From assembly GCA_002269645.1 (NCBI GenBank), contig NIVC01000818.1:1-64000 (forward strand): a stretch of 64,000 nt of DNA, written 5' to 3'. Source of the DNA: Macrostomum lignano. Its lineage: Eukaryota. A program made the translations under genes and the position numbers. Under the pieces are notes generated by a model. That model had not been told where the DNA came from. It saw only the letters and a list, made by a program, of their open reading frames with translations, and made no database searches. Of the stretch, positions 8,500 through 62,699 are shown piece after piece. Positions within the stretch are counted from its first letter, which is position 1. Every line of letters begins with the position of its first letter.

Positions 8500-9325
8500 A
8501 TGACCGCTCTGAGACAGCTGCTAGCCACATCGCTGCTGCTAAAGCTGGTGGCGGTGTTCACCTCGGCCGCCGCTCTCGAAGCCAGCACCGTGGCCTCCAC
8601 CAGCTACATCGGCTGCTATGTGGACAACCCGCTCGGAGTCCGCGACCTGGACGGCCTGTCTGGCATGAGCAGCATCGGAGAGTACGCGGTGAACTCTGTC
8701 CAGGCTTTTGTGAAGCGAATGTCCGACCTGACGGTGGCTCTGTGCAGCCACATCTGCTCGCTGGGCAGCTTCCGCTACTTCGCTCTGCAGAACTATCACG
8801 ACTGCAGCTGCGACAACGAGTACGGACTGTACGGCACCGCGGCGGAGTCGCAGTGCAGCTTCCCGTGCACCGGAAACTCCGCTGAGAAATGCGGCGGCGG
8901 GGCCCGGAACTCCGTCTACGAGAATGTCTATGCGACTCCGACAGCAGATCCAACTTCGGATAAGCCGTCTCCTGGTGAGCGCATGAATGCACGCGGACTG
9001 ATTGACTGACTTCCACAGATTTAGTTATATGATACGAGCGTATGGGTATCTATGCGGAAAAGATTTTGCTTCATCCAAATTCCCAGTGTCAGCCGCTGGC
9101 ATCTTCAACAAGATGATTGACCCGCCAGCCTCATCAAACGCCACCCTGGCCAGTCTGAAAACCGCCAACGCCATCGAGTGCGCGGCCGCCTGCCACCGCA
9201 GCCCGGACTGCCTCGCCTGCGCCTTCGTGCAGTCCAGCCGGATGTGCCACCTCATGAGATTCGCCGCTGTGCCCAGCGAGGTCAATAGCGAGGCGAGTTC
9301 AATCTGGACGAAAGTGCACGGCTGA
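8500..9325 (+). CDS. Secreted WSC + PAN/Apple protein, copy 1 (exons 8500-8974, 9093-9325; 235 aa)
   Basis: Hydrophobic signal peptide. WSC motif YIGCYVD..RDL..LTVALCSHIC..RYFALQ..CSC..YG..C..PC.GN..EKCGG..NSVY. Phase-1 intron GTGAGC(8975)..TGTCAG(9092). PAN motif ECAAACHRSPDCLACAFVQSSRMCHL. Confidence 0.9.
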
Positions 9326-9383
9326 GGCAGGACAAGCGATCGTTGGAACAAACCAAGCACTTGACAAATGTAATTGTGGCAAT

Positions 9384-10012
9384 GGCGGGCATCATAAACC
9401 CGAAATATCACAAGTCCAAAAAAGCACTTTCCATTATGAACGAAATATCGCAAACCCGAAATATAACAAACCCGAAATATCGCAAACCCGAAATATCGCA
9501 AACCCGAAGTATTGCAAACCCGAAATATCGCAAACCCGAAATATCACAAACCCGAAATATCACAACTCCAAAAAAGCGCTTTCCATTATGAACGAAATAT
9601 CGCAAACCCGAAATATAACAAACCCGAAATATCGCAAACCCGAAATATAACAAACCCGAAATATCGCAAACCCGAAATATCACAAACCCGAAATATAACA
9701 AACCCGAAATATCGCAAACCCGAAATATAACAAACCCGAAATATCGCAAACCCGAAATATAACAAACCCGAAATATCACAAACCCGAAATATCACAAACC
9801 CGAAATATCGCAAACCCGAAATATAACAAACCCGAAATATCGCAAACCCGAAATATCACAAAGCCGAAATATCACAACTCTAAAAAAGCACTTTCCATTA
9901 TGAACCCAAAATATTATAAATCCGAAAAAATCATAATTCCGAAAGTGCTAGCAACTCTCAATGCTATTTTAGTTTTCGGGTTTGTGATATTTCGGGTTTA
10001 TGATGGCGACCC
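9384..10012. mobile_element. MITE/foldback-like non-autonomous element with an internal 16-nt repeat array
   Basis: CATCATAAACCCGAAATATCACAA (9390-9413) is inverted at about 9982-10005. The interior is tandem (C/A)(G/A)CAAACCCGAAATAT units. Confidence 0.7.
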
Positions 10013-10319
10013 ATATTGTAATGCCACAAGTCTTACACTGCAGAACAATTCGTACTCAAGAGTCAGTGTACTCGGTACAATATAGCTTACCCTATTCTGT
10101 ACGACTCACACAGGTCAATCGCAGTAACCAAATCTAAAGTTTGCAACTAGGGAAAAACGTGAATTGTGAATGAGCAAATTGATGACTGACTTTATTCTTA
10201 TGGGTGGCGTCGGAGAGACAGCGCCGCTCACAGACTTCTTGGCTGCTCCAGTTGCAAGGCTCAAACTTGGCAGACTAGAAATAGATTTAGCGACAGGTTG
10301 AGTTGACAGGACAGATGCA

Positions 10320-11592
10320 AGCCTCGACATCTCAGCAGCTCTCCCAGTAAGCCTCGACATCTCAGCAGTTCTCCCAGTAAGCCTCGACATCTCAGCAATT
10401 CTCCCAGTAAGCCTCGACATCTCAGCAATTCTCCCAGTAAGCCTCAACATCTCAGCAATTCTCCCAGTAAGCCTCGACATCTCAGCAGTTCTCCCAGTAA
10501 GCCTCGACATCTCAGCAGCTCTCCCAGTACCAGTAAGCCTCAACATCTCAGCAATTCTCCCAGTAAGCCTCGACATCTCAGCAGTTCTCCCAGTAAGCCT
10601 CGACATCTCAGCAGCTCTCCCAGTAAGCCTCGACATCTCAGCAATTCTCCCAGTAAGCCTCGACATCTCGGCAATTCTCCCAGTAAGCCTCGACATCTCA
10701 GCAGCTCTCCCAGTACCAGTAAGCCTCAACATCTCAGCAGTTCTCCCAGTAAGCCTCGACATCTCAGCAATTCTCCCAGTAAGCCTCGACATCTCGGCAA
10801 TTCTCCCAGTAAGCCTCGACATCTCAGCAATTCTCCCAGTAAGCCTCGACATCTCAGCAATTCTCCCAGTAAGCCTCGACATCTCAGCAGTTCTCCCAGT
10901 AAGCCTCGACATCTCAGCAATTCTCCCAGTAAGCCTCGACATCTCAGCAATTCTCCTAGTAAGCCTCGACATCTCAGCAGCTCTCCCTGTACCAGTAAGC
11001 CTCAACATCTCAGCAGTTCTCCCAGTAAGCCTCGACATCTCAGCAGCTCTCCCAGTACCAGTAAGCCTCAACATCTCAGCAATTCTCCCAGTAAGCGTCG
11101 ACATCTCAGCAATTCTCCCAGTAAGCCTCGACACCTCAGCAATTCTCCCAGTAAGCCTCGAAATCTCAGCAGTTCTCCCAGTAAGCCTCGACATCTCAGC
11201 AGCTCTCCCAGTACCAGTAAGCCTCAACATCTCAGCAGTTCTCCCAGTAAGCCTCGACATCTCAGCAATTCTCCCAGTAAGCCTCGACATCTCAGCAATT
11301 CTCCCAGTAAGCCTCGACATCTCAGCAATTCTCCCAGTAAGCCTCGACACCTCAGCAATTCTCCCAGTAAGCCTTGAAATCTCAGCAGTTCTCCCAGTAA
11401 GCCTCGACATCTCAGCAGCTCTCCCAGTACCAGTAAGCCTCAACATCTCAGCAGTTCTCCCAGTAAGCCTCGACATCTCAGCAATTCTCCCAGTAAGCCT
11501 CGACATCTCAGCAATTCTCCCAGTAAGCCTCGACATCTCAGCAATTCTCCCAGTAAGCCTCGACATCTCAGCAATTCTCCCAGTAAGCCTTG
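10320..11592. repeat. 30-nt minisatellite CTCCCAGTAAGCCTCGACATCTCAGCAATT, with 36-nt variants carrying an extra CCAGTA
   Basis: About 40 copies. The unit resembles the degenerate CCTTGACATCTCAGC repeats inside the Helitron-like composites. Confidence 0.95.
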
Positions 11593-12555: not shown

Positions 12556-15500
12556 TCAGCTATAGAGGGTGGACTTAATCAGGCCGCTCGTGAACATAGC
12601 GATGACGGTTGTCATGCTCACGACAATGCCAGTGAGGCTCACGCACAGAGCCGCTCTGCCCAGCAGTCGAGCTCGTCGGAGGCGTCGCCTCTGCTGGTGA
12701 GCTCGCCCAGCCGAGTCCTGCGAGCTGCGGCCGCGCTGCTGCTCTTGAAGGATCAGCTGCTGCTGCATCGCCAGCGCCGTGACCAGCTCCGAGTGCGAGC
12801 GGACTGAGCAGGCCAGGGCAGCCAGGCCGAACGGCAGGTTGATGAACACAGCGGTGAGCACGGACACGATCAGGTAGGTTGTGCGATTCGCATTGCCCGG
12901 CTGCGGCTGGAACTGGCGAGGGTGCCGTTCGCATGGCTCCGCCAGGCCGTGCAGCGAGTGCCGGCTGCCTTGAAGCAGGCCGCTGCCGCCGCCGCCGCTG
13001 TCAATCAGCGTCACCAGCTGGTCGTCGTCTGGTGAAATTCCGGAAGCCGTGGCTGTCACAGAGGCGGGGAGAATTCATTTAGTACTGCTCGACAGACAAT
13101 GGTGGAGCTTCTCAAATACGAGTGTAATATTGAAAGAATTCTTAGAAAATCTAGGGCTCAGGGTCGAAAAAATACCTTAGAGCATGACTGCGGGCCGGAG
13201 GAATGGAGGAGGGGAGAGGAGAAGAGAGGAGAAGAGAGGAGGAGAGAAGAGGAGAGAGGAGAAGAGAGGAGAGAAAAGGAGAGAGGAGAAGAGAGGAGAG
13301 GAGAGGAGAGGAGAGGAGAGGAGAGGAGAGGAGAGGAGGCAGGGGTGTCGGTACCGGGGGGTGGGGGTACGGGGGCTAGAGCCCCCACTTTTTAGCATGA
13401 TCCAGCAAGTGCCCTTTTTGAATTTTAAACAAGTGTCGACTGGTTTTGGGCTCTGGCTTTTCTGAGTCTTGGAAGCTAAGGGGGGTATCAGCTGATATAA
13501 TAGTTCATGTTGTTCTCAATCTCCATTCCACTACAGTTTTTATCGAATGTGCATAAGCCTAGTGCTTTCAGTGCATTGGTTAGCATTTCACCTTAAGGGC
13601 CAGATTGAGAAGCTAGCGTGGCGCAATGACTGCCCTTCTGGGTTTGCTTCGCTGGGCCCCCGTAAGCAAAACGCGCCCAGTAGTCCCTGACTGCAGGCAA
13701 GAGAAGGGAGAGAGGATAGAGCAGAGAATTATATGAGCGTAGGAGAAAGTAGAGGCGAGGAGAGGAGAAGGAAAGGAAGGACAAGATAAGAGGAGAGAGG
13801 AGAGGAGAGGAGAGGAGAGGAGAGGAGAGAGGAGAGGATAGAAGAGAGGATAGAAGAGGAGAGGAGAGGAAAGAGGAGAGGAGAGGAAAGAGGAGAGGAG
13901 AGGAAAGGAGAGAGGAGATGAGAGAGGTGAAGAGAGGAAAGGAGAGAGGAGAGGAGATGAGAGAAGAGTAGAGGAGAGAAAAGAGAAGAGATAGGAGGGA
14001 GAGGAGAGGAGAGGAGAGAAGAGAGAAGAGGAGAGGAGAGGAAAGGAGAGAGGAGATGAGAGGAGAGGAGAGGAGAGGAGAGGAAAGGAGAGAGGAGAGG
14101 AGATGAGAGAGGTGAGGAGAGGAGAGGAAAGGAGAGAGGAGAGGAGATGAGAGAAGAGAGGAGAGTAGAGGAGAGAAAAGAGAAGAGGAGAGGAGAGGAA
14201 AGGAGAGAGGAGAGGAGAGGAGAGAAGAGAGAAGAGGAGAGGAGAGGAAAGGAGAGAGGAGAGGAGAGTAGAGTAGAGAGGAGAAGAGAGGAGAAGGGAG
14301 GAGAGGAGAGGAGAGGATAGTAGAGGAGAGGATAGTAGAGGAGAGGAGAAGAGAGAAGAGAGGAGAGAAGAGAGAGGAGCACTGAGAAGAGAAATAAACA
14401 TTGAGCGGGCCGGGTTGCTATTGTGAAGTTTCAACGGACCGAGGGTCGGAATTTTCCGGCCACTGATAGGCGGATTACGAGAATTTACCCAGTACTCGTA
14501 ATTTGATTTCTATGAGAATTACATGTCAAGCTATGTATATTTCAGGTAAGATTCGAAGAAACCTGTATAAGAAGTTAACCTGACCGTGCATGGCGACCAT
14601 GAGCCGAAATTTTTGCGTCTTATAGTCTGTACTATGCACTCACTGTATGATTCATATTAAAAGTAGACGAAAAAGTTGCCAGTTGTAAGTTGACCCGCGA
14701 GTGGCCAAAAATGTCAGAATTCCGGTTACTAGGTAGAGTTTGTAGATTTAAGTGACCGAAAAAGTTTACCATCAACCGTAGACGCTTTGAGCGCACCGGC
14801 CTCATTGTTAAACTACAAACCGGACTCTTTTCGTTTACTATTCATTTGCTGTGCATTTTAGTTACTTACTGCGAAATGCTTCAATGCGAACCCCTTCAAT
14901 TTTACACCCTTCATGCGTGCAGGCGTCCATTCGCTTTAACAGTCCATGAAGCCAGCAATCGCATGTTTCATGCTTCTATTCAAGCCATTTTACAAGTGGG
15001 AATTCCAACGAATTGTGGAAATGACCACAGCACGGAATGCTGACAAATCCAATTAAAAAATCGTGCATTTGTGTGCTCAAGCTGTCGCTAAGGCCCCATG
15101 CGCTAGTGGGAATGAGAGCGGCAGAGCAGACACTCCGTCGAGTGAATCCTTTGACTGAAGCGTTAAATATGATCGGACTGGTGATTGCATTTGTATTGCC
15201 CATCGACACTCTCAAATCGTGCCAATTTTGTGCCAGGAAAATGGCACAAAATTTTGAGAGAGAAGAAAATTTTAATTTTTATTTGCCCTTAAATTCTCAA
15301 TATCTCACCTTCTGAACTTCCAAATTGCAAAGTAAAAGCATGTAGAAACCTGTGCTTAGACCGAGGTGCATGCAAGTCTACCAAACTATTTTTTATGAAA
15401 TGCTTTAACCGAGACCGGAAAGCAAGCCAAGTTCCTTCTTTTAATTTAGCATCCACAGTATGTTACTCTGTTGTGGCTATTTAATTTACATGTAGCTGTG

Positions 15501-18044: not shown

Positions 18045-19625
18045 CTGCCCACTGAAGGCTTTAGATGGGGGATAGAATGCCCACTGAAGGATTTAGATGG
18101 GGGATAGAATGTCCACTGAAGGCTTTAGATGGGGGATAGAATGCCCACTGAAGGCTTTAGATGGGGGATAGAATGCCCACTGAAGGATTTAGATGGGGGA
18201 TAGAATGCCCACTGAAGGATTCAGATGGGGGATAGAATGCCCACTGAAGGATTCAGATGGGGGATAGAATGCCCACTGAAGGATTTAGATGGGGGATAGA
18301 ATTCCCAATGAAGGATTTGGAGGGGGGATAGAATGCCCACTGAAGGATTCAGATGGGGGATAGAATGCCCACTGAAGGATTCAGATGGGGGATAGAATGC
18401 CCACTGAAGGATTTAGATGGGGGATAGAATGCCCACTGAAGGATTTAGATGGGGGATAGAATGCCCACTGAAGGATTTAGATGGGGGATAGAATTCCCAC
18501 TGAAGGATTCAGATGGGGGATAGAATTCCCACTGAAGGATTTAGATGGGGGATAGAATTCCCAATGAAGGATTTGGAGGGGGGATAGAATGCCCACTGAA
18601 GGATTCAGATGGGGGATAGAATGCCCACTGAAGGCTTTAGATGGGGGATAGAATGCCCACTGAAGGCTTTAGATGGGGGATAGAATGCCCACTGAAGGAT
18701 TTAGATGGGGGATAGAATGCCCACTGAAGGATTCAGATGGGGGATAGAATGCCCACTGAAGGATTCAGATGGGGGATAGAATGCCCACTGAAGGATTTAG
18801 ATGGGGGATAGAATTCCCAATGAAGGATTTGGAGGGGGGATAGAATGCCCACTGAAGGATTCAGATGGGGGGTAGAATGCCCACTGAAGGATTCAGATGG
18901 GGGATAGAATGCCCACTGAAGGATTTAGATGGGGGATAGAATGCCCACTGAAGGATTTAGATGGGGGATAGAATGCCCACTGAAGGATTTAGATGGGGGA
19001 TAGAATTCCCACTGAAGGATTCAGATGGGGGATAGAATTCCCACTGAAGGATTCAGATGGGGGATAGAATTCCCAATGAAGGATTTGGAGGGGGGATAGA
19101 ATGCCCACTGAAGGATTCAGATGGGGGATAGAATGCCCACTGAAGGATTTAGATGGGGGATAGAATGCCCACTGAAGGATTTAGATGGGGGATAGAATGC
19201 CCACTGAAGGATTTAGATGGGGGATAGAATTCCCACTGAAGGATTCAGATGGGGGATAGAATTCCCACTGAAGGATTCAGATGGGGGATAGAATTCCCAA
19301 TGAAGGATTTGGAGGGGGGATAGAATTCCCACTGAAGGATTCAGATGGGGGATAGAATTCCCACTGAAGGATTCAGATGGGGGATAGAATTCCTAATGAA
19401 GGATTTAGATGGGGGATAGAATGCCCACTGAAGGCTTTAGATGGGGGATAGAATGCCCAATGAAGGATTTAGATGGGGGATAGAATGCCCAATGAAGGAT
19501 TTAGATGAGGGATAGAATTCCCACTGAAGGATCTAGATGGGGGATATAATGGCCACTGAAGGCTCTAGCAGGGGGATAGAATGTCCACTGAAGGATCTAA
19601 ACGGGAGATAGGATGGCCGCTGAAG
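18045..19625. repeat. 32-nt satellite CCCACTGAAGGATTTAGATGGGGGATAGAATG with 256-nt higher-order periodicity
   Basis: About 49 copies. The variant CCCAATG..TTGGAGGGGGG recurs at 18304, 18560, 18816, 19072 and 19296. Confidence 0.95.
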
Positions 19626-19667
19626 GACCCAAATTAGCACTGAGCCGAAGCAAGAACTCCAACCTGA

Positions 19668-22600
19668 TCAGCTGCACTCAGAGGCTGCCCCGCCATCGGG
19701 AATCTGGTGCAGATATCCGTAGCCCAGTCCGCAGCCCAGAGCGCCGTCGCCGCCCCAGTTGGGGTCGGGCCTGACGGTTAGCAGGCGGAACTGCTCAGTG
19801 CTGCTGCAGTAGACGTGCAGCTGCAGCGCGGACTGGGCAGCTGCGTGAGATTCGATCAGCTCGAACAGGTCCTCGTGCGTGTGCAGCGGAGCGGAGCCTG
19901 TTCTGCAGTCGGCGGCATCGCAGTCCACGACAGCGGCCCCGCCAACAATGAAGTCGCTGTCGGGGCGCAGGCCGGCCACACTGGCCGGGGAGCCTGGCGC
20001 CACGTCCAGCACGCGCCAGGCCAAGGCCGGTTGGCCGGCGCTGCAGCACAGACGCACGCTGACGCCAAGGAGGCCATGGCCGCCCCACTGGCCGCTGCCA
20101 GGCTCCGAGCCAGAGGCCAGGTCAATGTGAACCTGGCGGACCGTGCGCTGCTTACTGCTGTACACGGTGAGGTCAACTGAGGACAGAGCTTGAGCAGTCG
20201 GCCTCAGCAATGAGTGCAGCTGCCGTTCCGGTGTCTGCAGGTGAAGATATTTTGCTAGCTAAGAGAAGTTCAATTTTGCACGAAGGATCTATTATGGAAA
20301 ACCACTCATTTTGGTACCGAAGCCAAGCATCCATTTAGGCGCCACAGACAGGCACTTATTTTGGCGCTGAAGGCAAGCATCCATTTAGGCGCCACAGACA
20401 GGCACTTATTTTGGCGCTGAAGGCAAGCATCCATTTAGGCGCCACAGACAGGCACTCATTTTGGCGCAAAGCCAAGCATCCATTTTGGCGCGGCAGACAT
20501 AGGCACTTATTTTGGCGCTGAAGGCAAGCATCCATTTAGGCGCGGCAGACATAGGCACTTATTTTGGCGCTGAAGGCAAGCATCCATTTAGGCGCGGCAG
20601 ACATAGGCACTTATTTTGGCGCTGAAGGCAAGCATCCATTTAGGCGCGGCAGACATAGGCACTTATTTTGGCGCTGAAGGCAAGCATCCATTTAGGCGCG
20701 GCAGACATAGGCACTTATTTTGGTGCTGAAGGCAAGCATCCATTTTGGCGCCGCAGACAGGCAGTTATTTTGGCGCCGAGGGCAAGCATCAATTTTGGCG
20801 CCGCACAGGCACTTATTTTGGCACCGAAGGCAAGCATCCATTTTGGCGCCGCACAGGCACTTATTTTGGCGCCGAAGGCAAGCATCCATTTTGGCGCCGC
20901 ACAGGCACTTAATTTGGCGCTGAAGGCAAGCATCCATTTAGGCGCCACAGACAGGCAGTTATTTTGGCACCGAAGGCAAGCATCAATTTTGGCGCCGCAC
21001 AGGCACTTATTTTGGCACCGAAGGCAAGCATCCATTTTGGCGCCACAGACAGGCAGTTATTTTGGCACCGAAGGCAAGCATCAATTTTGGCGCCGCACAG
21101 GCACTTATTTTGGCACCGAAGGCAAGCATCCATTTTGGCGCCGCAGACAGGCAGTTATTTTGGCGCCGAGGGCAAGCATCAATTTTGGCGCCGCACAGGC
21201 ACTTATTTTGGCGCCGAGGGCAAGCATCAATTTTGGCGCCGCACAGGCACTTATTTTGGCACCGAAGGCAAGCATCCATTTAGGCGCCACAAACAGGCAC
21301 TCATTTTGGCGCAAAGCCAAGCATCCATTTTGGCGCCGCAGACATAGGCACTTATTTTGGCGCCGAAGGCAAGCATCCATTTTGGCGCGGCAGACATAGG
21401 CACTTATTTTGGTGCTGAAGGCAAGCATCCATTTTGGCGCCGCACAGGCACTTATTTTGGCACCGAAGGCAAGCATCCATTTTGGCGCCGCACAGGCACT
21501 TATTTTGGCGCCGAAGGCAAGCATTTATTTTGGCACCGCAGACGCCAAAGGTCTACAAATTTAAAGGTCAATAAAAGCAAGAACACAAAGCTCCTTACCA
21601 CATGCTGCCCATTAATAGCTAGTATAAAGTCAAAATATGGCTGAAGACCAGCTTGCTTTGCAGGAGAGTTGTGCTGCACCTACAGTATTAAGAATTAATA
21701 ATAAATTTAAGCTAACTATGATAAAAATAGGCAGTGTTTAATTCATTGATCGTTTCTTTTCATTATACTCATAAAAGTCCTTAGTCTAAAGCCTAAAGGT
21801 AAATCTTAAATTATAAAACAGGTCTATCAAAAAATTATACAAAATGCCAATAGGCCTTTAACTAAACTTCAAACATTCAAAATTACTTTTTTTGAAAAAT
21901 CTAACCTGATACTACTTTGAATATTTTGTGTGAATCATAATAACAGAGCATTTCATATCACAAATGCATATAAAACTGCAAGTTTTAATCAGCCATTTTA
22001 ATTTTTACTCTCCTTGATCTATTGATTGTACTTTGTCTGCTGCTACTGTAGTCAGGTTTGCAACTTAAAAACAAAATAAATTAAAGTCCTAATGATATGA
22101 TATAATGATATTAGTAGACTTGGTTACATAAAAAATAATCAATGAGCATTATTTTGATTTGTAATGGAAGAAAAGGTAATTGACACTCAAACTCCTACTA
22201 GATCAACTATACCTTCAACTTAACCAATAACAAGTGGAGCTAGAGTTGGGCCACAGACAAGCTCCTTGAATGCAAAAGCAAGGCGGCAATACTGATAAGC
22301 TTCTATTGCCTTATTCTGATAAAGGTCTGATACTAGTCTCCAAGGAGGCTGCAATTGATATAGACATTTATGCTAGCAATCATGATGGCATTGCTAGTAA
22401 TTGATTCAGGCTTGGTATAGGTGTGCGGCTCTTTTTCTGCCAATATTGTTAGCTCTGTGTTTGTTCTGTGTGATGGTTTAATAATTTTATTTATTTTCAT
22501 CTCTTAGTGTATAATTATCAACCAGACTGAACCCATTTATTTATTGCCTTATACAGTTTTCAATTTTCTTTATTTATTTAAATATACAGAATTTTGAATC

Positions 22601-32309: not shown

Positions 32310-32497
32310 GACGTCTTCGAAGTCGAAGGACACCGTGAACTTGGCACAGAGAGCTGTTCGCTGAAGTTTCTACGAGTCATTCATTTTTTTTGAAAAAAGT
32401 TAAAATTTACTTTGGGTATCGGGTGTTTTTAATTAGCTGCTCCAATGCACTTCAGAATTATAATTACTTTGGCACCTCAAGAAAGCAAGTAGGCGGC

Positions 32498-45243: not shown

Positions 45244-45245
45244 TT

Positions 45246-45764: not shown

Positions 45765-46600
<836 letters not shown>

Positions 46601-47743: not shown

Positions 47744-47820
47744 GTCTGCGGAGAACTTGAAATTACCAGACTGATTCAGACTCAGCTCTCCGTTCATCAT
47801 CGCAACCCGTCGCTGAGCCA

Positions 47821-51115: not shown

Positions 51116-51983
51116 ATGCATGCGGCTGCTTTCTCGCTGCTGCTGTTGCTCGTCAGCGGTGGCGGCTGCACCGTCGCAGTTCCTCCACAGCCGCTGGGGT
51201 TCAGCCACGTTGGCTGCTATGCGAATGGCGGCGGCGGCAACAAAGACTTGGCCGGACTTCTCGGACTCGTCTCGCTTGGAATGTTTGCCAACCATGAGAA
51301 CGTCCCTGCATTCGTGCGCACTGACAGCTCGATGACCCTGGAGCTGTGCAGCCAGATCTGCTCCTACGGCCGGTTTCGCTACTTCTGCGTTCAGGGCAGG
51401 CACTTCTGTGGCTGCGACAACACGTTTGGCTCCCACGGTGCCGCTGCTCCGTCGGACTGCAGCGTGTCCTGCGGAGGAAATGCGAGTCAGATTTGCGGTG
51501 GCTGGGGCTACAGCTCCATCTACGAAATCTCCTATGCTCCCGGTACGACGGTTGCTTTGAATAAGAAGAAACTATTTGCTAATAGTTATTTAACTTTAAC
51601 GGATTGAATACAAGTACTATCTAACTTGCTATTGTGTTCGATGAAGATGTAACTTCTCATGCATTCAGATTAAAAGCTTAGCATTGGTCACCAGAATGCA
51701 TGACAGCAGAAAGTCACTCAGCAACTTCTTTCACTCAACTTCACCCGCAGTCGGGTCCGTGTTGGAGCGAGTGGCCGCGTCTGCCATGCCGACCATCTCA
51801 GCCTCCGCCAGCTCCGTCATCTACTGGAGCCAGGAGGCCACGGTGGCCTTCGAGTGCCTCGCCGCCTGCCACCGCAGCCCGGACTGCCTCGCCTGCGCCT
51901 TCGTGCAGTCCAGCCGGATGTGCCGCCTCATGAAATTCGCCGCAGTGCCCAGCGAGGTCGCCAGCGAGGCCCAGTGGGTCTGA
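51116..51983 (+). CDS. Secreted WSC + PAN/Apple protein, copy 4 (exons 51116-51542, 51751-51983; 219 aa; TGG>TGA four codons before the family stop)
   Basis: Signal peptide MHAAAFSLLLLLVSGGGC, WSC domain, 208-nt phase-1 intron GTACGA..CCGCAG. TGA at 51981 is followed by the ancestral GTG AAG CCG TGA (51993-51995). Confidence 0.88.
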
Positions 51984-52637
51984 GTGAAGCCGTGAGCCTG
52001 TCGGCTGATAATCTGCCGTGGAGAAACAAACAGCTCTGAACCCAAAGCTCATTTTGTCTGCTTAAGGAAATGTTTGAACAATTGGTTGAAGCAGCAGGTG
52101 GCCACAAAATATTGGCAGATTGAATTTGCAGTGCTGCCACAATACCAAGATCACAACACAACAGACGATAAGTGAATTATGGCATCGCAAAACTCGAAGC
52201 AAAACTCGGCTGCCTACTGTTAATTATTTCTTCATATATCCGTTACAGACATGGAGTTACACTAGGCAGTTAGCTGTACATATTGATCCAACTGATCTCA
52301 AATCCAAGTATCCAACAGGAAATGCACCGATCAGGGAAATGAGAGTTTTATTAGCAGAATCAGCGACTTGATCATGCAGCCTCTGGACTCAAAGCCCAAC
52401 GTTATAGAAAACGCTGCTTGTTTCACAAATTCCGTTAATTTTTTGGGGACAGTTTACTGTAAATGCTTCTTTATGAAACCCTTGTCTAAGTTAATGAGTT
52501 ATCAACCTGACATTGGCGCATTAAATCTTAAGAAATCGACTACACTACTATTTAGTAGCGAGATATGAATAGCAAATACACTGTTGAAAATGCATCGAAA
52601 ATTTAAAGCCAACTGTGCTTCTGCTCCTGCCTCCTGG

Positions 52638-52905
52638 CTCGGCTTCTGTTGCTATGGCTTCGGCTTCTGTTGCTATGGCTTCGACTTCTGTTGCTATGGT
52701 TTCGGCTTCTGTTGCTATGGCTTCGACTTCTGTTGCTATGGCTTCGGCTTCTGTTGCTATGGCTTCGGCTTCTGTTGCTATGGCTTCGGCTTCTGTTGCT
52801 ATGGCTTCGGCTTCTGTTGCTATGGCTTCGGCTTCTGTTGCTATGGCTTCGGCTTCTGTTGCTATGGCTTCGGCTTCTGTTGCTATGGCTTCGGCTTCTG
52901 TTGCT
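52638..52905. repeat. 21-nt minisatellite GGCTTCTGTTGCTATGGCTTC
   Basis: About 13 copies. A single copy sits at the paralogous site 59361-59381. Confidence 0.95.
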
Positions 52906-54696
52906 AGTTGCTAGTCTCTCGCCTCTTCTAGTCAGTAGCTATTCATCCCTGGGATTCCAGATTTTAACCAAATTGAGCTGCCCTCAGCTTCCATTGTGCT
53001 TGGGGGCTTCGGTGCAGGCATGTTCGAATGGTCTTATCATCAGGTTTATTATGCCGCACAGTAAAGTCGTTTGACGTGACCTGAAACGGGTTATTTTGGC
53101 ATTTTTGGCTGTTCTCCATGTCCACAATGCAATGCAAGCAGCACCCACAATGTAATGCAAGCAGCACCCACAATGCAATGCAAGCAGCACCTACAATGCA
53201 AGCCCGCCATCAAACCTGAGCGAGTCGCTTTTAAAAAACAAGCATCATCCATGGACTACTGAAACTAGTTTCGAGGTGATGCTACTAAAACTTGTTTTAG
53301 TAGTCCCTGGCATCACCTGAGCGAGGCAATGCCAAGGAGAGCTCTGAGCTGAACAGCTTAAACAGAGTTTTGAGCTCTGCCCTCCCTGCCCGGTCCATCT
53401 TGCTCTGACCTTGGTCCATCTGCTGGCTCCTCTGGCTGTCTCCCTGCCCTTGTGTCTCGGCTCTCATCCTGACAGTGGACTGGAGATGGGAGAGTTGCAT
53501 TACTTGTCACGCATTGCTGTCTTCTGCTTGCTCTTGTTGAAAATTTTCAACAAGCTGGTGCTTGCATGCTAATCCTCCCACAGCGATTCAGCGAGAGGTA
53601 AGAGACGAGACTGATGCAGACAAAGAATTCTATACAATAGATAGCTATGCGAAAGAGATGCCGCTGGTGCCTGAGTCGACTCAGTCACGGTGGGAAAGAC
53701 AGTCGGCCTGGAGGGGTAGGCTGGATCGATGGATCTTCAGCAGCAGTTCTGCAGCAGTCTGGTGTTACGAATCAGTGCCAGCGCTGTCAATGCTTCCGCT
53801 GCTGTGGAGTTTGAGGCTGACGTGTTGTGCATGCATCTATCAGTGTCTCCGGGTTGAGCAGCTTTGCTTAGCTGTCTCAGCTTTGCTGCAATGCTTTAAT
53901 CCTCACCTGGCAGCAGAGTGGAACAAAACTCGGTACTCTTACCACTGCTTCTTGACTCGGCTTCCGTTGCCTCGGTCATTCGGCTCGTTACCGATTGACT
54001 CCCGATTCGGGCACCTGGGGTTTGGAAATTGCATCCTTCCATTTGCAACGATAAGATAGTTTAGTGACTTGGTGCTATTCCACTTTCCATTGCTACTGCT
54101 TTGTTTTTGTTTGCATTTTCAGTTTTCTTTCCTTGAATTCGCGCCTGTCGGCATCCTACGTCAGATAGACTGACTATTTATGCTGTGCAATGGGGCGTGT
54201 TTCACGTGACCATCGGGTTGAATTGGCTGTGTTCAGGTAAGTGGATTTCCACGCTAGCACAAGTTTCTTGTGAAAGGCGCGAATTCGAATATACTCCGGC
54301 TTTCGCTTGCCGCTTTCCATGTCAATCAAGCGATACAATGCGAGCTTCCTTTCTGCCTCTCTGCCGCTTGGTCAAGATGGACAAGGGAAGCGAGGTTGGT
54401 TGTCTTGCTGGTTACCATGGCAACTTGTCTGAACTGCTTACCAGCCTGCGCAGGAGAGTTACAGAGTCACCAAGCCCCGCAAGTCGCAAGCAACCAATGA
54501 AATTTCATCAACTCATGCCATTGTTTCTTGTGAAAAAGTCCGCATATAATACACATCCGCCTGAAAGGCATTTTGGCCTGTCCGTAATCTTGTCAAAGGG
54601 TGTCCAGCAGTGAATCCTCATCCTGTAGTCAGAGTCCAGCAGCGTCAAGCAGCCTTCAGTCTCCATCCAGATTGCTGTTACCGCCAGTGCGCCAGC

Positions 54697-55447
54697 ATGC
54701 AGCGCTCCGTGCACCTGACTGCCCTCCTATCCGTGCCTCTGGCTCTGCTGTTCCTGGTGGCGATGAGTCAGCCAAGTGTGCTGCATCACGGATACATCGG
54801 CTGCTTTGTTGACAGCAACAGCAATAGAGATTTGAAAGGCCTGACTGGGTTGAAGACAATTGGGCCTTTCACCGATAAGATAAACTTGGCCTACTTTTAC
54901 AATAAATACACCGTCACCATCGAGAGCTGCAGCAGCCTCTGCGCCCTGGGCAGATTTCGCTACTTCGGTCTGCAGGCGGGAGGCTTCTGCTTCTGCGGCA
55001 ACAGCTACGGACTGCATGGAGCCGCTTCATCAGATTCTGAGTGTAACAAAAACTGCTATGGAAATAGCAGCCAGATTTGCGGCGGCTTCGGTAGAAACTC
55101 GGTGAGAACTTCTATGCGCCCGGTAAGAAAAGTTTGCTGTTCCTTTAGCTAAAAATTCCTGCATCTACATTTTTCTGCATTTGTGCTGCTGCTCGGAGAC
55201 CGGCCTCTTCAAGCGCGTGGCCTCAACCAAGTCGATGCTCACCACCGCGCCCGGACAGCCAGAGAACAGCACCTACTGGAGCCAGGAGGCCACGGTGGCC
55301 TTCGAGTGCCTCGCCGCCTGCCGCCACAGCCCGGACTGCCTCGCCTGCGCCTTCATGCAGTCCAGCCGGATGTGCCGCCTCCTGAGATTCGCCGCTGTGC
55401 CCGGCGAGATCGCCAGCGAGGCCCAGTGGGTCTGGGTGAAGCCGTGA
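54697..55447 (+). CDS. WSC + PAN/Apple copy 5: frameshifted but potentially rescued (exons 54697-55122, 55199-55447; 224 aa), otherwise a pseudogene
   Basis: Net 4-nt deletion at about 55101 (CATTTA>GG) relative to copies 2 and 6. The family acceptor CTCAG has become CTCGG, leaving the next AG (55197-55198) 2 nt downstream. The net loss of 6 nt keeps the frame. Confidence 0.7.
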
Positions 55448-56573
55448 GCCTATATGTGGACTGATAGTCTACCGTGGATAAACAAACATTGAACAGTTAC
55501 CAGCGCAGAACACGAACCTACTAAAGCTTGTTTGTTTAAATGAACGAGAATTTGAAAAAAATGATAATTGAAGCAGCAGGAAGACCGGAACATTTGCGGT
55601 CACACTTTGAAATCATAACGCAAAACAACAAAATAATATAATAAACTCGATTATTTAGCTTTTATCGCATTGCAAAAATGTCTAATATTTTTTTTCTTCA
55701 TCCACTAAAGTCTAAGTAGATATTAATCATTGATAACTTATCCTTGACCTTGATCAACCAAGTTGGTGCTGAAAATTCTGAAAAGTTCTGAGCGGTAGAA
55801 AAACACAGTGCGGGTTTTGCCAGCACAGATCTCGGATGCGCCATGGAATCGCGGAGTCTGCGAACTGACATCATCTGTTGATTGACAACCATGTGTTTTA
55901 TCGACCTTGGCTCCCCATCAATTTTCCAACCAGCATTCATTGCCATTGCCAAGGTGAGCAGGTGCTCATCATGTGATTGTATCCCTGGGTGAACCCCTCG
56001 TTATCTAAGCAGGCATCAGCCAGTTGTTGAACTCGAAATCGCGTCTGTCAGCGGAGATGCATGACCTTAAGAAGAGTTATCAAGAGTACTAAAGCAGAAA
56101 AAGCAGCATAAGGCATAGGGAAAGTCTGACAGTCTTGTAACTTTCTGTGGCCTCTGGCACAACGCTAAGTCAGTCTTAGGAGTCTTGGTGGTAGCAGTGG
56201 TCCTAAGGACATGAAATCAAGAAATAGAAACCATTTTTCATAATGGGCACCACTCCAGTGGATCCACTTTGTTCTTTTTCTAGTGCAATGAATATATTTT
56301 ACAAACTGATTGTCTACTTTCAGTAGCAAAATAAGCGGCAGATGGGTAGAAAATTTTACTATTGCAATTTTTGTACTTGCTTTATACTTATTTCACATAA
56401 GCAGAAGTCTCTTGCCCCAAATGCCAAAGTGTATAGAGGAACAGATTCTGCTGTAGTTGCACACAGCTTCTGTACAGAATGCAAACTGGCAACTTGACTC
56501 TTGTTTGAGTAAGCCGTTCACCCATTGGTATTTATATTGTGAGAGTATTCTGCTTTTGTAATCTTTGTATTAA

Positions 56574-56810: not shown

Positions 56811-56839
56811 TTTCTTGATTAATTTTTTATTTGTCAATA

Positions 56840-58980
56840 ACCATGGAAAGTGCACGCGCACCAACAGCCAGACAGCTCAGAAATCAAGGCGCTCACACGG
56901 CTTTAGTGTGAGCTCAACGGGAATCAGACTGCTGCCTCCCTACTTCAAGGTGAGCTCACAGCTTTTCCTGCTGTTGTGTACGAGGCCTTTTTATCTTGCG
57001 CAGGTGTAGAGAGCGGTCAGTCGGCCAGAAAGCGCAGCCGGGCCTACCTGATCCGAGAATTTGTCAGGCCCAACGCCAACCAGTCAACCAAGAGCCTGAC
57101 CGCCTGGATGGAGAACGGAAACTTGGTGATCAAAAAGCAGCCGCCAAGCCTAAGCAAAATTTACACTCACCAATGGATCTCTGGCAATGCTCAAATCCTA
57201 CAACGCCTGAACTGACGACGGCTCGCTCATCTACTTGAGTGACGACGGATCTGTGAGCACCAGCAAGCTGAGAGGCTACCTGCTGTACTCCCAGAAGATT
57301 GGAGAACTCTTGGACGCCAACTACAGCCCAAACTGTGTGTGCGAGTTTGATGAAGACTACAGGAAGCTGATGGCCGAGTCGGACTGCAAACCCCCGCAGC
57401 TGTACCACCGCCACCTGAACGCTCCACGCAATCTGAAGGTCACTTTGAACCGACTCGGTATTTCGCAGCCGCAGGCGCCCATCTGCCTGAGCTTCAACTC
57501 ACCAGCCGGCTCTCAACGGTCCAGCTGCCGGTGCCGGCACGTCTGCAAGCTGCCTGGCTGAGGCAAGCCGCATCCCGCCCACTGCATCATCAGAGCACGA
57601 TGCGGCGGAGGGGTCAAAGAACTAGATTTACTTTATAGCCACCATGCTTTTATCTCCCAACCGCTCTCATCCCATTGTTTGCATCCCCGATCGCCCCTGC
57701 TTGTCATTCCCCCCCCCGCCCCCGCCGCACATGCTGTCTTCCGACATGAACTTGGCTTCTTGGAATCTTCTGCTTCACAACGACCCAGACGAGAGATTCC
57801 TCCGAAGAGGCCTTCATATTGGCTTCCGCCTCATCAACAAGCCTCCGCCTGTCTTCGCGCATTCTGCCAACTACCGTTCCGCTACTGACCATGCCGAGCA
57901 GGTGGACAAGCAACTCTCCGAAGAGCTCCGCCTTGGCCGCTTAAAACCCGCTAGCAGACGCGTCATGGTGAATGCTATCGGTGCGATTCCCAAGTCTGAC
58001 GGCAGCGTTCGGATCATTCACGATCTGTCCAGTCCTTCCGGCTCTTCGGTGAACGACAGCTATGAGCAGGAGCGGAGTCTGAGGTTCTCCTTCGTGTAGG
58101 ATCTGCTGCGTCACATCCGGCCAGACTCGTTTATGGGCAAGGTCGATCTGAAGCAGGCCTACCGCTCTGTCGGCATTCAACCCGGACGATCAGGCGCTGA
58201 CGGGTCTCAGCTGGCGTTTCGCGGCTGGCACCGAATCCTCGGTGTTCATCGACACCCGGCTGCCATTCGGTGCCCGGGCCTCTGGCGAGATCTTTCACCG
58301 CCATTCATCGCCACATGCATAGGCAAGGCTACTAAGCTTTTGTCAACCTGGACGACTGGGTGGTTGCCGGCGACTCGCAGGAAGAAGCTGAATGCACTTA
58401 CGACTACCTGGTGCACCTCCTGCAAGACCTGGGCTTCACCATCAACTGGAGCGAGTCCACGGCCTCAGCACAGTGGATGGTCTTCCTTGGCGTCCAAATC
58501 GACACAATTGACGACGCGCTGTCGCTGCCCATGGACAAGGCCGCCAGCACCAGAGATTTGCTGAAGGACATCGCAACTCTCCCGCAACATCGTCAAGCTC
58601 AAGCAGCTGGAGAGGCTGGCCGGGAAGCTGTGCTGGTTGGGCCAGATCAACAAGCTGCTGCGTCCTTTTTGACCTCATTAGCGACAGTCGAGATCTCCGG
58701 CTGCCTCAAGAAGGTCACAGTCTGCTGCAATGGTGGCTTCAGACAGTGGACTCTGCCACCTACACAGCTTCACCCGCGCTTCCATCAGTTGGTGGCCATC
58801 GAGTCCGACAGCACCTCTGAAGGCCTTCCTGGGCGGTCTCTCTGTGGCCGACATCTGCTGCATTGGTGACTGGCGCTGCGGCTCCGTCGTCTCCTATTTC
58901 TCGGACGATGCAGACTTTGCCCGCAGACGCTCTGCTGTCACCTCATTGAAGCCTGCACTAGTCAAATCCTTAGTCAAGCC
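56840..58980 (+). mobile_element. Decayed Ngaro/DIRS (tyrosine-recombinase class) retrotransposon: gag plus RT; no recombinase seen
   Basis: Gag-like YLLYSQKIGELL..EFDEDYRK and zinc knuckle CLSFN..CRCRHVCKLPG*GKPHPAHC. RT motifs GLHIGFRL, AIGAIPKSDGSVRIIHDLSSP, KVDLKQAYRSV, DTRLPFG, NLDDW (YLDD site) and FLGVQIDT. There is a stop at 58097-58099 and several frameshifts. Confidence 0.85.
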
Positions 58981-59577
58981 ATGACTCAAAGCTCAGCGTT
59001 ATAGAATACGTTCTTGATTTCATGATTTCCGTTTATGTTTTGGGGACAATTTACTGTAAATGCTTCGTTATGAAACACCTGTCAAAAATAATCAGCCGTT
59101 AATCTGACATTGACGCATTAAATCTCAAGCAATCGACTACTATTGAGTAGCGAGATAGGAATGACAACTACACCGTTAAAAATGCGTTGAAAATTTAAAA
59201 GCCAGCATTCTGGACCGGGTCCAATGTTTCTTTCTCGAGTTCTCGAGTTTTGAACACGTGCATTGCTGGTTGGCATTATACCAGCATAAGACCAGAAAAT
59301 GATACCGCATGTATTCAGCGTAGACTTTCTCGTTGCTCTCTAAGCGCTACTCCTCTTTCTGGCTCGGCTTCTGTTGCTATGCGGTCTTGTGCCTTTTGAA
59401 GTGAGAAGCTCTTCATCCCTGAAATTCCAGATTTCAATCGACTTGGGCTGCCCTGAGCTGCCATTGTGCTTGGGGGCTCGGGTCCAGGCTTGTTCATTGT
59501 GGTCTTATTATCATGTTTGTCACGTCGCACAGTGAAGTCGTTTGACGTGACTTAAGACCGGTTTGTTCTCTATGCCA

Positions 59578-60010
59578 ACAATGCAATGCAAGCAGCACCT
59601 GCAAGTCAATGCAAGCAGCACCCACAATGCAATGCAAGCAGCACTCACAATGCAATGCAAGCAGCACCTGCAAGTCAATGCAAGCAGCACCTGCAATGCA
59701 ATGCAAGCAGCACCTGCAATGCAATGCAAGCAGCACCCACAATGCAATGCAAGCAGCACCCACAATGCAATGCAAGCAGCACCTGCAAGTCAATGCAAGC
59801 AGCACCCACAATGCAATGCAAGCAGCACCTGCAAGTCAATGCAAGCAGCACCCACAATGCAATGCAAGCAGCACCCACAATGCAATGCAAGCAGCACCCA
59901 CAATGCAATGCAAGCAGCACCTGCAAGTCAATGCAAGCAGCACCTGCAATGCAATGCAAGCAGCACCTGCAAGTCAATGCAAGCAGCACCTGCAATGCAA
60001 TGCACACAGC
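59578..60010. repeat. About 23-nt mosaic minisatellite CAATGCAATGCAAGCAGCACC
   Basis: Roughly 19 copies here versus about 3 at the paralogous site 53125-53200. Confidence 0.95.
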
Positions 60011-60916
60011 TACAATGCAGCTCTGTGAAAAGCCCGCCATCATCACCTGAGCGAGTCTCCTTTATGAGACGCGTGGCACCTGCTCTCCAGGCAATGCCAG
60101 GAGAGCTCTGAGCTGAACAGTTTGAGCTTTGAGTCGCTGATGAGAGGCAATTTCAAGAATTCTGAGACACGCAGAGTTAGGAGCCTGTGGCAGCTTCATC
60201 TTCCATGAGAGCTATGTTCCCAAAGATGGGAAAGCCGCATGACTTGCATCTTCTGCTTGCTCATTAAAATTCTCAACAAGCTGTGCTTGCAGGCTAAGCA
60301 TCCTACAACGATTCAGCTGGGGGGGGATTAGAGACGGAACGGATGCATCGATCGATATTCGCTTTCAGTTCAACAGCAGTCTTGTGCCACGCACCAGTGC
60401 CAGCGCTTTCAATGCTTCTGCTGCTTGGCTGATGTGGAGTTTGAAGCGTTGCTTTTCTGCTGTGCATGGCAGGCTTTCCCGCCTGAGCAGCTCTGCTTAT
60501 CTGTCTCAGCTTTGTCTTAATCCTTGGCAGCAGAATGGAACAAAACTTCTTGCTCTTGCCCCGCTGTACTCCTTGACTCGGCTTTTGTGGCCTCGGTCGT
60601 TTCCGCTTGACTCCCGATTCGTACCCTGGGGTTTGGAAATTGCATCGTTATTTTGCAACGATAATACATCAAAGACCACCAGGAACACTTTGTAGTCTAG
60701 AAGTATTTGCAACATATTTTTAGTTTGGGAAGCAGGAGTACATTTAGCTAGTTTTAGTGGCTCTGTGCTATCTAACTTTCTCGGCGCTACTGCTTTGTTT
60801 TTTGCTACATTTTCACTTGTTTTCTTTTACCCGATATCGTGTCTGTCGGCATTCTGACTACATGTATGTATACTATGTACTGTGCATGTTTCATGTGACC
60901 ATCAGGTTGAATTGGA

Positions 60917-61332
60917 TGTTTCAGATAGGTTCAGGTAGGTTCAGATAGGTTCAGGTAGGTTCAGTTAGGTTCAGGTAGGTTAAGTTAGGTTCAGGTAGGT
61001 TCAGATAGGTTCACGTAGGTTCAGATAGGTTCACGTAGGTTAAGTTAGGTTCAGGTAGGTTCAGATAGGTTCAGGTAGGTTAAGTTAGGTTCAGGTAGGT
61101 TCAGATAGGTTCACGTAGGTTCAGGTAGGTAGGTTCAGGTAGGTTCAAGTAGGTTCAGGTAGGTTCAGGTAGGTAGGTTCAGGTAGGTAGGTTCAGGTAG
61201 GTAGGTTCAGGTAGGTAGGTTCAGGTAGGTAGGTTCAGGTAGGTTCAAGTAGGTTCAGGTAGGTTCAGATAGGTTCAGATAGGTTCAGATAGGTTCAGAT
61301 AGGTTCAGTTAGGTTCAGATAGGTTCAGTTAG
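60917..61332. repeat. 10-nt repeat AGGTTCAGGT / AGGTTCAGAT
   Basis: About 40 copies. A single GTTCAGGTA sits at the paralogous site 54231. Confidence 0.95.
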
Positions 61333-61945
61333 GTAGTTTTGCCGTCGAGATTTACGAGCGTTGCAATTTAGCATGCTATAGCATCTAAAGCATTGCCTGG
61401 GCCGGCTCTGAGCCACGGTGAGTAACGGACTATCGCTCGAGAAATCACAAGACAAATCGCAAAGCTGTGCAAGGCAAAGGAAGATTGTTACAGCTACATG
61501 TACTAGCTAATAACAAACAGATAGTCCAGCAATTTTTATCAATGGATATTAAGGACTTTCTGTGACGATTCAGAAACCGAAGATACCGACAGCGGCTTTC
61601 GCTTGTAGCTTGCAGTGTCAATCAAGCGAGACAATGCGAGCTTCCTTTTATAATTGTTGTCTCTCTGCCGCTCCGTCAAGATGGACAACGGCAAGTTGAG
61701 CTGGTTTTGGTTTGCTGGTGACGAAGCCAGCCTGCCTCAGAAGAATTATTTTCACCAAGTCCCGCAAGTCGCTGCAACCAATGAAATTTCATCTGCGTCG
61801 CATTCATGCACGCCATTGTTTCTTGTGGCAAATCGTGCATATACATGTAGGCCACATTTGCTTCAGAGGTATCCCAGCTTGACTGTAATCTTGTCAAAGG
61901 GTGTCCTGCAGCCTTCAGTCTGGCTGTAACCGCCGGTGCGCCAGC

Positions 61946-62699
61946 ATGCAGCACTCCGTGCACCTGATTGTCCTCCTATCCGTGCCTCTGGCTCTGCTGT
62001 TCCTGGTGGCGATGAGTCAGCCAAGTGTGCTGCATCACGGATACATCGGCTGCTTTGTTGACAGCAGCAGCAATAGAGATTTGAAAGGCCTGACTGGGTT
62101 GAAGACTATTGGACCTTTCACCGATAAGATAGAGTTCGCCTACTTTTTCAATGGATACACCGTCACCATCGAGAGCTGCAGCAGCCTCTGCGCCCTGGGC
62201 AGATTTCGCTACTTCGGTCTGCAGGCGGAAGCCTTCTGCTTCTGCGACAACAGTTACGGACTGCACGGAGCCGCTTCATCAGATTCTGAGTGTAACAAAG
62301 ACTGCGTTGGAAACAGCAGCCAGATTTGCGGCGGCTTCGATAGGAGCTCCATTTATGAGAACTTCTATGCGCCCGGTAAGAAAAGTTTCCTGGTCATTTA
62401 GCTGACGATTCCTGCATCTGCATTTTCTCAATTTGTGCTGCTGCTCAGAGACCGGCCTCTTCAAGCGCGTGGCCTCAACCAAGTCGATGCTCACCACCGC
62501 GGCCGGACAGACAGAGAACAGCACCTACTGGAGCCAGGAGGCCACGGTGACCTTCGAGTGCCTCGCCGCCTGCCACCGCAGCCCGGACTGCCTCGCCTGC
62601 GCCTTCGTGCAGTCCAGCCGGATGTGCCGGCTCCTGAGATTCGCCGCTGTGCCCAGCGAGGTCGCCAGCGAGGCCCAGTGGGTCTGGGTGAAGCCGTGA
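61946..62699 (+). CDS. Secreted WSC + PAN/Apple protein, copy 6 (exons 61946-62375, 62449-62699; 226 aa)
   Basis: Intact signal peptide, 8-Cys WSC, 73-nt phase-1 intron GTAAGA..GCTCAG, PAN core, AATAAA at 62729. Confidence 0.92.

Follow-up and report, generated by a model that had tools for sequence, protein, structure and literature searches.

A cluster of six WSC–PAN genes in Macrostomum lignano with diverged WSC exons and a PAN core probably homogenised by gene conversion

How can neighbouring genes carry very different WSC domains and still end in nearly the same PAN module? The question is raised by a 64,000 nucleotide (nt) stretch of the Macrostomum lignano contig NIVC01000818.1 (assembly GCA_002269645.1), in the following called the window, in which a cluster of six two-exon WSC–PAN genes spans positions 8500-62699. 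A sequence-only reading of the window had taken the cluster for a diversified recognition system, i.e., variable glycan-sensing WSC heads on a constant PAN effector, similar in logic to the FREPs of snails or the VCBPs of amphioxus. Here, we find that the constancy of the PAN core extends to synonymous sites, and we attribute it mainly to what looks like local gene conversion that acts in addition to purifying selection. The explanation we favour, i.e., a species-restricted paralog cluster with PAN conversion whose products are presumed parts of a gland secretion, is given a probability of about 0.6 as a whole.

Gene models and domains of the cluster

We used the list of open reading frames (ORFs), junction sequences and explicit splice models to define six units on the + strand (u1 to u6, Table 1), each with two exons and about 220 amino acids (aa). 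Each unit starts with an ATG and a hydrophobic leader, followed by a WSC domain, a GT..AG intron (73-208 nt among the six copies), and a linker with a short PAN module up to the stop codon. Screening the window via tblastn with each WSC type and the PAN segment yields a copy number of exactly six with zero extra fragments. Furthermore, a 43-nt word from the PAN core has six matches (at most one mismatch) in the window compared to zero expected ones. Together with the Pfam assignments below, this confirms the earlier proposal of six same-strand genes with a putative signal peptide and WSC in the first and linker and PAN in the second exon. The phase-1 intron that had been proposed for all copies is found in u1, u2, u3, u4 and u6, where it directly follows the conserved 'Y(A/P)P' end of the WSC domain at the border to the linker, but not in u5, which shows a deletion and a lost acceptor. 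In u4, a premature stop (TGG>TGA) removes the last four residues.

We also considered whether the units are exons of one large gene. This was rejected because each unit comes with a separate ATG, leader and stop and because unrelated genes lie between them. The gap between u1 and u2 alone covers 27 kb and holds unrelated genes of a housekeeping type (Table 1), i.e., the cluster is a loose one and not a strict tandem array. No motif common across WSC types was found in the upstream regions; the sole shared word is the 9-mer AGCCTTCAG, present in 5/6 copies at variable positions, which we judged not meaningful. Also, the six copies show no common poly(A) signal pattern. The cluster probably consists of six paralogs of which five look intact and u5 is decaying. 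Among them, u1, u3 and u4 are unannotated and appear to be three undescribed genes.

The WSC domain (PF01822) is assigned by Pfam in 6/6 copies with 38-57 bits at a cut-off of 27.8 (E 1e-9 to 3e-15). Four types can be distinguished, i.e., u1, u3, u4 and u2/u5/u6, with an aa identity of 44-53% between types and about 88% within u2/u5/u6. That is, the estimate of four very different types that are about half identical holds. All eight WSC cysteines (C36, C78, C82, C98, C100, C116, C120, C128) are invariant in 12 family members, and the 'CGG' motif is present in 6/6 window copies (CGA in one paralog). Eight cysteines, i.e., four disulfides, and the CGG motif characterise the WSC domains of Wsc1 and Kremen (PMC9024836). 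Both share these features and the fold with the flatworm domain (Wsc1, 7pz2; Kremen1, 5fws) but are membrane receptors with other domains (Kringle and CUB for Kremen), whereas the flatworm proteins are short and soluble. The leaders are hydrophobic and have small residues ahead of 'Y(I/L)GC', where the mature protein would start; a C-terminal hydrophobic anchor is absent in all six proteins.

For the PAN module, Pfam's PAN_1 (PF00024) is borderline, with 21.3-25.0 bits at a cut-off of 21.4, such that 5/6 copies are just above and 1/6 is just below. The assignment is nevertheless upheld by profile and fold searches. The family profile of the PAN core, whose pattern 'EC.AACHRSPDCLACAFVQSSRMC.L.RFAAVP' is nearly invariant across the six copies, matches within the PDB the SML-2 apple lectin (E 2.6e-6), TgMIC4 (E 2.8e-4) and the HGF N domain (E 0.016). 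For the fold search, an AlphaFold (AF2) model was built from a 12-sequence alignment. Since its mean predicted local distance difference test score (pLDDT) is 58 (domain cores about 70-77), the model is used for domain-level fold matches and not for disulfides or interfaces. At this moderate confidence, Foldseek relates the WSC domain to Wsc1 (7pz2, E 8.8e-6, TMt 0.74) and Kremen (5fws, E 1.3e-5), in line with the Pfam call, and the C-terminal module to the HGF N domain, SML-2 and MIC4 (42-47 residues, root-mean-square deviation 1.0-2.9, probability about 1, E 0.05-0.1). We thus regard the C-terminal module, as predicted from profile and model, as a true but minimal PAN core. WSC itself adopts the PAN/Apple fold (PMC9024836), i.e., each protein consists of two modules of one fold.

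The module shows the four-cysteine core pattern of PAN domains, i.e., a helix C-x3-C paired with two strand cysteines (C14, C18, C24, C36 in alignment A4, invariant in 12 divergent M. lignano family members). With about 45-55 residues, the core is truncated; it lacks the outer apple disulfide pair and has one subfamily-specific additional cysteine ('CLAC'). The mature protein has 13 cysteines in total. Given this odd number, the unpaired PAN cysteine may form an intermolecular disulfide, i.e., link dimers or tether the protein to a partner. The best profile matches, Sarcocystis muris SML-2 and Toxoplasma MIC4, share the core cysteine pattern and bind galactose, but they do so with tandem apples that have additional disulfides, compared to the single truncated core with an extra cysteine found here. 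Since these nearest solved relatives are galactose-binding apple lectins, the PAN module may itself be a glycan binder instead of an effector or oligomeriser, judging from its sequence relationships.

Synonymous sites and the constancy of the PAN core

That the PAN module is almost invariant was found to be true for its core only. The constancy covers the last ~100-150 nt of exon 2, whereas the linker half of the exon is as divergent as the WSC exon. In the nucleotide alignment of exon 2, a stretch of about 135 nearly identical bases has a sharp start at 'TCGAGTG' and extends to the stop codon, while linker codons, introns and flanks are unalignable between WSC types. The PAN tracts (Table 1) are 89-96% identical on the DNA level between genes whose WSC exons cannot be aligned by blastn. 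Accordingly, self-blastn between types aligns only 121-219 nt of exon 2 with 87-96% identity, and the homology of u1 to the other copies is limited to 9169-9294.

We compared synonymous (dS) and nonsynonymous (dN) divergence of both domains for the same gene pairs using the Nei-Gojobori method (NG86). Between types, the WSC domain shows a dS of 0.95-2.2, i.e., saturation, a dN of 0.44-0.59 and a dN/dS of 0.22-0.55, compared to a dS of only 0.04-0.24 for the 50 codons of the PAN core, a contrast of approximate size. In every pair tested, WSC has significantly more synonymous differences than PAN (Fisher p 1e-3 to 3e-10). Both regions also differ in the GC content of third codon positions (GC3), with 0.88-0.96 for the PAN core and 0.65-0.73 (u2-u6) or 0.84 (u1) for WSC. 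Within the young triplet u2/u5/u6, the WSC dS is 0.14-0.19 (dN/dS 0.54-0.75) and the introns differ by 16-22%, while leader, linker and PAN show a dS of 0-0.04.

An unlinked paralog (P0007/L001) is located on another contig beside a P450 gene, and its NCBI gene model has the homologous phase-1 junction. When relating this paralog to the cluster, we observe a dS of 0.55-0.79 and a dN of 0.15-0.25 for PAN, and a dS of 0.7-1.7 and a dN of 0.40-0.51 for WSC. In the wider M. lignano family, PAN varies in sequence, i.e., it is constant only within this cluster and subfamily.

Homogenisation is also reflected in mosaic copies. The second exon of u4 starts with a u3-like linker (type A in u3, which is common to u4 and P0007) and is u5/u6-like from 51818 to 52032, such that its tract shared with u5/u6 extends 49 nt past the stop codon into the 3' untranslated region (UTR). 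Likewise, the PAN start 'ECAAAC' of u2 agrees with u1/u3 and differs from its sisters u5/u6. The informative sites of the PAN core split the copies into {1,2,3} versus {4,5,6} and {3,5} versus the rest, and both partitions conflict with the WSC clade {2,5,6}. Taken together, the low PAN dS, the mosaic tracts, the incongruent sites and the divergent unlinked paralog argue that local gene conversion, added to purifying selection, is the main cause of PAN constancy, as far as the sequences can tell.

The duplications behind the paralogs are old, with WSC synonymous sites now saturated, and moderate purifying selection accompanied the divergence of the WSC exons. In the resulting scenario, the linked copies would have repeatedly homogenised their last ~100-220 nt, i.e., the PAN core and sometimes part of the 3' UTR, by a conversion that was probably GC-biased. 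In addition, PAN is under a stronger protein-level constraint than WSC. Conversion and stronger PAN constraint together would yield the picture of a variable head and a constant tail. It is possible that conversion halts at the PAN core due to selection against converting WSC or due to too little homology. If selection that keeps the WSC types distinct indeed confines conversion, the cluster would provide a compact case of how a 750-bp gene is divided between conversion and divergence. The exon-internal split between a diverging WSC domain and a converted PAN core appears to be undescribed. It shares with other cases of region-restricted concerted evolution the local dS dip, mosaic borders, incongruent trees, high GC3 and divergent unlinked paralogs; concerted evolution is a general process, not a specific molecular system. 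In terms of method, a 'constant domain' in a clustered family needs a check of its synonymous sites before it is read functionally, since gene conversion yields the same picture as a constant effector module.

This is the point at which the recognition reading has to be weighed, i.e., a lectin-type, immune-like system in which the WSC heads were driven apart and PAN was kept as common effector or oligomerisation module. Four WSC types (five when including a homolog outside the window, see below) on one PAN type are what such a system would look like, and the genes are lineage-specific, clustered and predicted to be secreted. The fairly high WSC dN/dS of the young triplet and the odd PAN cysteine, which could mediate oligomerisation, fit as well. 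On the other hand, the WSC dN/dS stays below 1 in every pair, both between types and within the triplet, so that the sign of diversifying selection the reading calls for is missing from these comparisons. Functional constancy of PAN does not predict a constancy that includes synonymous sites, the 3' UTR and mosaic tracts. Moreover, PAN varies across the wider family, and its closest solved relatives are sugar-binding lectins themselves. The variable glycan-sensing head on a constant effector is thus not borne out, and we consider the whole reading unlikely. The likeness to FREPs and VCBPs is superficial, i.e., a multigene family of secreted proteins pairs a variable lectin-like with a constant domain. 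Their domains are unrelated to WSC and PAN, the cluster, which is seen here as a single haplotype, shows no positive selection in pairwise dN/dS, and the tests we ran lend the analogy no support.

Gene conversion might be dispensable if very strong purifying selection on the PAN protein were combined with extreme codon bias. In fact, PAN dN is 2-3 times below WSC dN even when compared to the unlinked paralog, and a GC3 near 0.96 restricts the synonymous states. But P0007 with its GC3 of 0.83 still shows a PAN dS of 0.55-0.79 versus 0.04-0.24 within the cluster, and neither the homology of u4 to u5/u6 up to 49 nt past the stop codon nor the incongruent site partitions and the u4 mosaic are accounted for, which makes selection without conversion quite improbable. 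Conserved synonymous sites with sharp boundaries could also indicate that the ~100-150 nt form a nucleotide-level element of the six mRNAs, e.g., an RNA structure, small-RNA target or localisation signal. Here, the PAN core is not predicted to fold more stably than shuffled sequences (z = -0.34), i.e., it shows no special RNA structure, such that we rejected an RNA element as main explanation. Given that the stretch also coincides exactly with the structured PAN core and that P0007 does not retain the nucleotides, this alternative is very unlikely. Finally, mixed paralog reads could have homogenised the PAN exon during assembly or polishing, given a highly repetitive, polyploid-like genome and the many minisatellites of the window. 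Independent public protein models from other assemblies (P0001-P0006, UniRef/WormBase-type; PAA-series NCBI) share the PAN core on different WSC types, however, and each copy keeps private substitutions within the core. We therefore regard such an artefact as hardly credible.

Relatives and possible role of the family

We assessed the distribution of the family by an exhaustive profile search among 1.84 billion protein representatives, for which the alignment left out u3. Since WSC is common, the search results in 8641 matches. All full-length two-domain matches with checked source are from M. lignano. Matches of ~170-240 aa with both domains form at least nine representative clusters at 50% identity (P0005, P0006, P0008, P0063, P0067, P0085, P0098, P0100, P0102). 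The other full-length matches are long M. lignano models with 5-7 WSC-PAN units in a row (P0014, P0016, P0162), which are most simply explained as read-through models of other tandem arrays. The close homologs (n=13) are likewise all from M. lignano and carry no annotation beyond 'WSC domain-containing protein' or 'hypothetical protein'. Outside flatworms, the best matches come from oysters, an annelid, fungi and a diplonemid and are multi-WSC proteins. In a few uncharacterised environmental proteins, three WSC domains occur together with PAN_4.

Among the homologs, P0004 (UniProt A0A1I8H460) is identical to u2 over long stretches, and the WSC domain of P0001 looks like a mosaic of u6, u2 and u5. 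We also note that P0006 (UniProt A0A1I8IH79), which is located outside the window, has a fifth WSC type (49% identical to u6) and a PAN core identical to that of the cluster, i.e., the pattern of many heads and one tail is carried beyond the window. P0006 is probably a further member of the cluster or of its homeologous copy.

Our literature searches on Macrostomum with WSC or PAN brought up only seminal-fluid papers (see below) and nothing on a WSC–PAN layout. WSC and PAN modules, lineage-specific clustered secreted families, WSC-rich seminal-fluid candidates and partial gene conversion are each already known. The minimal two-domain family with WSC followed by PAN, restricted to M. lignano in the libraries searched, appears to be undescribed, in agreement with the sequence-only reading. 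Both modules are also found within one secreted protein in fungal copper-radical oxidases (Colletotrichum graminicola, PDB 6ryv/6ryw/6stx, with N-terminal PAN_1 and WSC), which surfaced in the fold and profile searches along with multi-WSC glyoxal oxidases (9n3u). In the fungal oxidases, PAN precedes WSC on a large catalytic domain, whereas the flatworm proteins consist of WSC followed by PAN only, and there is no close sequence relationship.

With regard to function, the proteins would bind glycans or proteins as part of a gland secretion. By analogy to published data, a gland or seminal-fluid secretion is the most likely role, which we hold tentatively and at well below even odds, with the male accessory gland (prostate) or seminal fluid as most likely site. 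This site is suggested because tandem-cluster WSC proteins are the largest recognisable class of prostate-limited candidates. Table S1 in Weber et al. 2018 (PMC5977470) lists 76 putative seminal-fluid transcripts that are prostate-limited, of which, by our own count, at least 20 are WSC-type according to descriptions such as 'fungistatic metabolite', 'WSC domain-containing' or 'Plasminogen' of oyster. The transcript RNA815_80.4 (Mlig-pro5) encodes two WSC domains and is required for prostate antibody staining (Arbore 2015, PMC4490696). Mlig-pro46 and Mlig-pro63 are WSC-type with gene-ID prefix Mlig021499, and their RNA interference (RNAi) phenotypes concern sperm competitiveness or the partner's 'suck' behaviour (Patlar 2019, PMC6953679; bioRxiv 10.1101/734301). 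Several seminal-fluid transcripts map to many copies under one locus prefix (e.g., Mlig021499.g3/g4/g8/g10 and Mlig024181.g1-g10), a genomic style like that of the window. The Mlig-pro WSC candidates come from the same species and are, like the window family, putatively secreted, multi-copy, poorly annotated and lineage-specific; they are described as WSC or multi-WSC proteins with the PAN module unreported, whereas the window family combines WSC and PAN. The reproductive or gland secretion that had been named as an alternative to recognition thus fits the published M. lignano data better, although it finds no primer match among the 18 transcripts considered below. A role as defence or mucus lectin is less likely.

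A more specific idea is that the shared PAN with its free cysteine is kept uniform by conversion that selection exploits, such that it docks or disulfide-links all proteins to one partner, while the WSC heads escape conversion and diversify their ligands in sexual conflict (i.e., seminal fluid against partner tissues) or defence. We consider this doubtful. If true, it would constitute a true variable-plus-constant secreted recognition or manipulation system. In any case, sexual selection in hermaphrodites is studied with M. lignano as a model, and exact gene models of a species-restricted WSC–PAN subfamily would provide paralog-specific targets for in situ hybridisation, RNAi and glycan-binding studies.

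Several points weigh against our explanation of a converted PAN core in presumed gland proteins. NG86 estimates of dS are unreliable at saturation and extreme GC3, hence the approximate size of the WSC/PAN contrast, and nucleotide-level selection may act on the PAN core. On the protein side, the signal peptides were judged by eye only and the structural model is of low confidence. For u1, u3 and u4 no matching public protein record was found, i.e., their transcription is putative. With regard to the seminal-fluid role, the 36 primers of 18 of the 76 transcripts, those tested by RNAi, show no match in the window with up to 4 mismatches, bar one chance match, and the gene IDs of the family's WSC–PAN relatives are absent from the searchable literature.

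Copy u5 and the remaining window

The exceptional copy u5 shows a 4-nt deletion just after 55101, i.e., at the end of WSC, and its acceptor is changed from CAG to CGG. The next AG is found at 55197-55198. As a result, u5 is in frame only when using the acceptor 2 nt downstream (55199, phase 0, 224 aa) or a cryptic donor at 55101. The 4-nt deletion and the 2-nt acceptor shift sum up to exactly 6 nt, such that the phase-0 splice restores the PAN frame. We considered u5 as a functional phase-0 variant. Despite the intact frame, decay is more likely because u5 has lost the conserved SIYEN.YAP strand and differs from u2 in the PAN core by 9 nonsynonymous and 0 synonymous changes. The frame restoration is either a coincidence in a decaying copy or marks a compensated variant. 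The junction 'RTSMRP/TGLFKRV' of u5 is also present in the UniProt model P0005 from another locus.

Both u5 and u6 are part of a collinear segmental duplication (52386-56063 versus 58983-63535) with 72-82% identity in non-coding blocks and flanks. Upstream of u6, the duplicate is interrupted by extra sequence at ~56.1-59.0 kb. The ORFs 57644-58869 within this insert show reverse-transcriptase-like motifs by eye ('IPKSDGSVRIIHDLS', 'DLKQAYRSV') and have no Pfam match.

Table 1. Coordinates of the WSC–PAN units, their homogenised tracts and other features of the window (slash in the u3 donor: exon end).
Feature	Position	Strand	Details
u1	exon 1 8500-8974, exon 2 9087-9325	+	237 aa; intron 112 nt, phase 1; exon 1: putative signal peptide and WSC type 1; exon 2: linker type C and PAN
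u2	exon 1 36467-36899, exon 2 36973-37223	+	227 aa; intron 73 nt, phase 1; WSC type 2/5/6
u3	exon 1 47821-48247, exon 2 48348-48592	+	223 aa; intron 100 nt, phase 1, donor A/GTGTGT; WSC type 3
u4	exon 1 51116-51542, exon 2 51751-51983	+	219 aa; intron 208 nt, phase 1; WSC type 4
u5	exon 1 54697-55122, exon 2 55199-55447	+	224 aa via phase-0 junction
u6	exon 1 61946-62375, exon 2 62449-62699	+	226 aa; intron 73 nt, phase 1
PAN-core tract u1	9169-9294	+	nucleotide comparison
PAN-core tract u2	37074-37223	+	nucleotide comparison
PAN-core tract u3	48443-48592	+	nucleotide comparison
PAN-core tract u4	51846-51983	+	nucleotide comparison
PAN-core tract u5	55298-55447	+	nucleotide comparison
PAN-core tract u6	62551-62699	+	nucleotide comparison
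weak CD225-like ORF	12556-13059	-	between u1 and u2
GRASP55/65 PDZ-like exon	19668-20210	-	E 8e-38; between u1 and u2
ankyrin repeats	28604-29137	+	unrelated gene between u1 and u2
split protein-kinase domain	30612-32309	+	after the ankyrin repeats; preceded by 33-nt coding repeat
minisatellites (examples)	288-894, 1330-1682, 2057-2926, 7810-8232, 9441-9877, 10319-11590, 13751-14379, 18046-19627, 20303-21543		
minisatellites (examples)	32494-32877, 37771-38409, 46094-46575, 49475-50009, 52635-52906, 59579-60004, 60920-61334, 63488-64000		

Beside the features listed in Table 1, long ORFs at 2948-4351 (- strand, 467 aa) and 33416-34807 (+ strand, 196 and 221 aa) show no convincing Pfam match and may be exons of flatworm-specific genes. 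The density of minisatellites in the window is extraordinary, with periods of 9-48 nt and up to ~50 copies, and gives rise to many long spurious ORFs on both strands. Several of the arrays lie directly 3' of WSC–PAN genes (u1, u2, u4). Two large arrays of one 23-nt minisatellite (ACATGACGCTTCTATGATTTTTT and its reverse complement), located in opposite orientations at 23944-25849 and 41733-43305, cause the two AT-rich troughs (GC 0.32-0.37) of the window.

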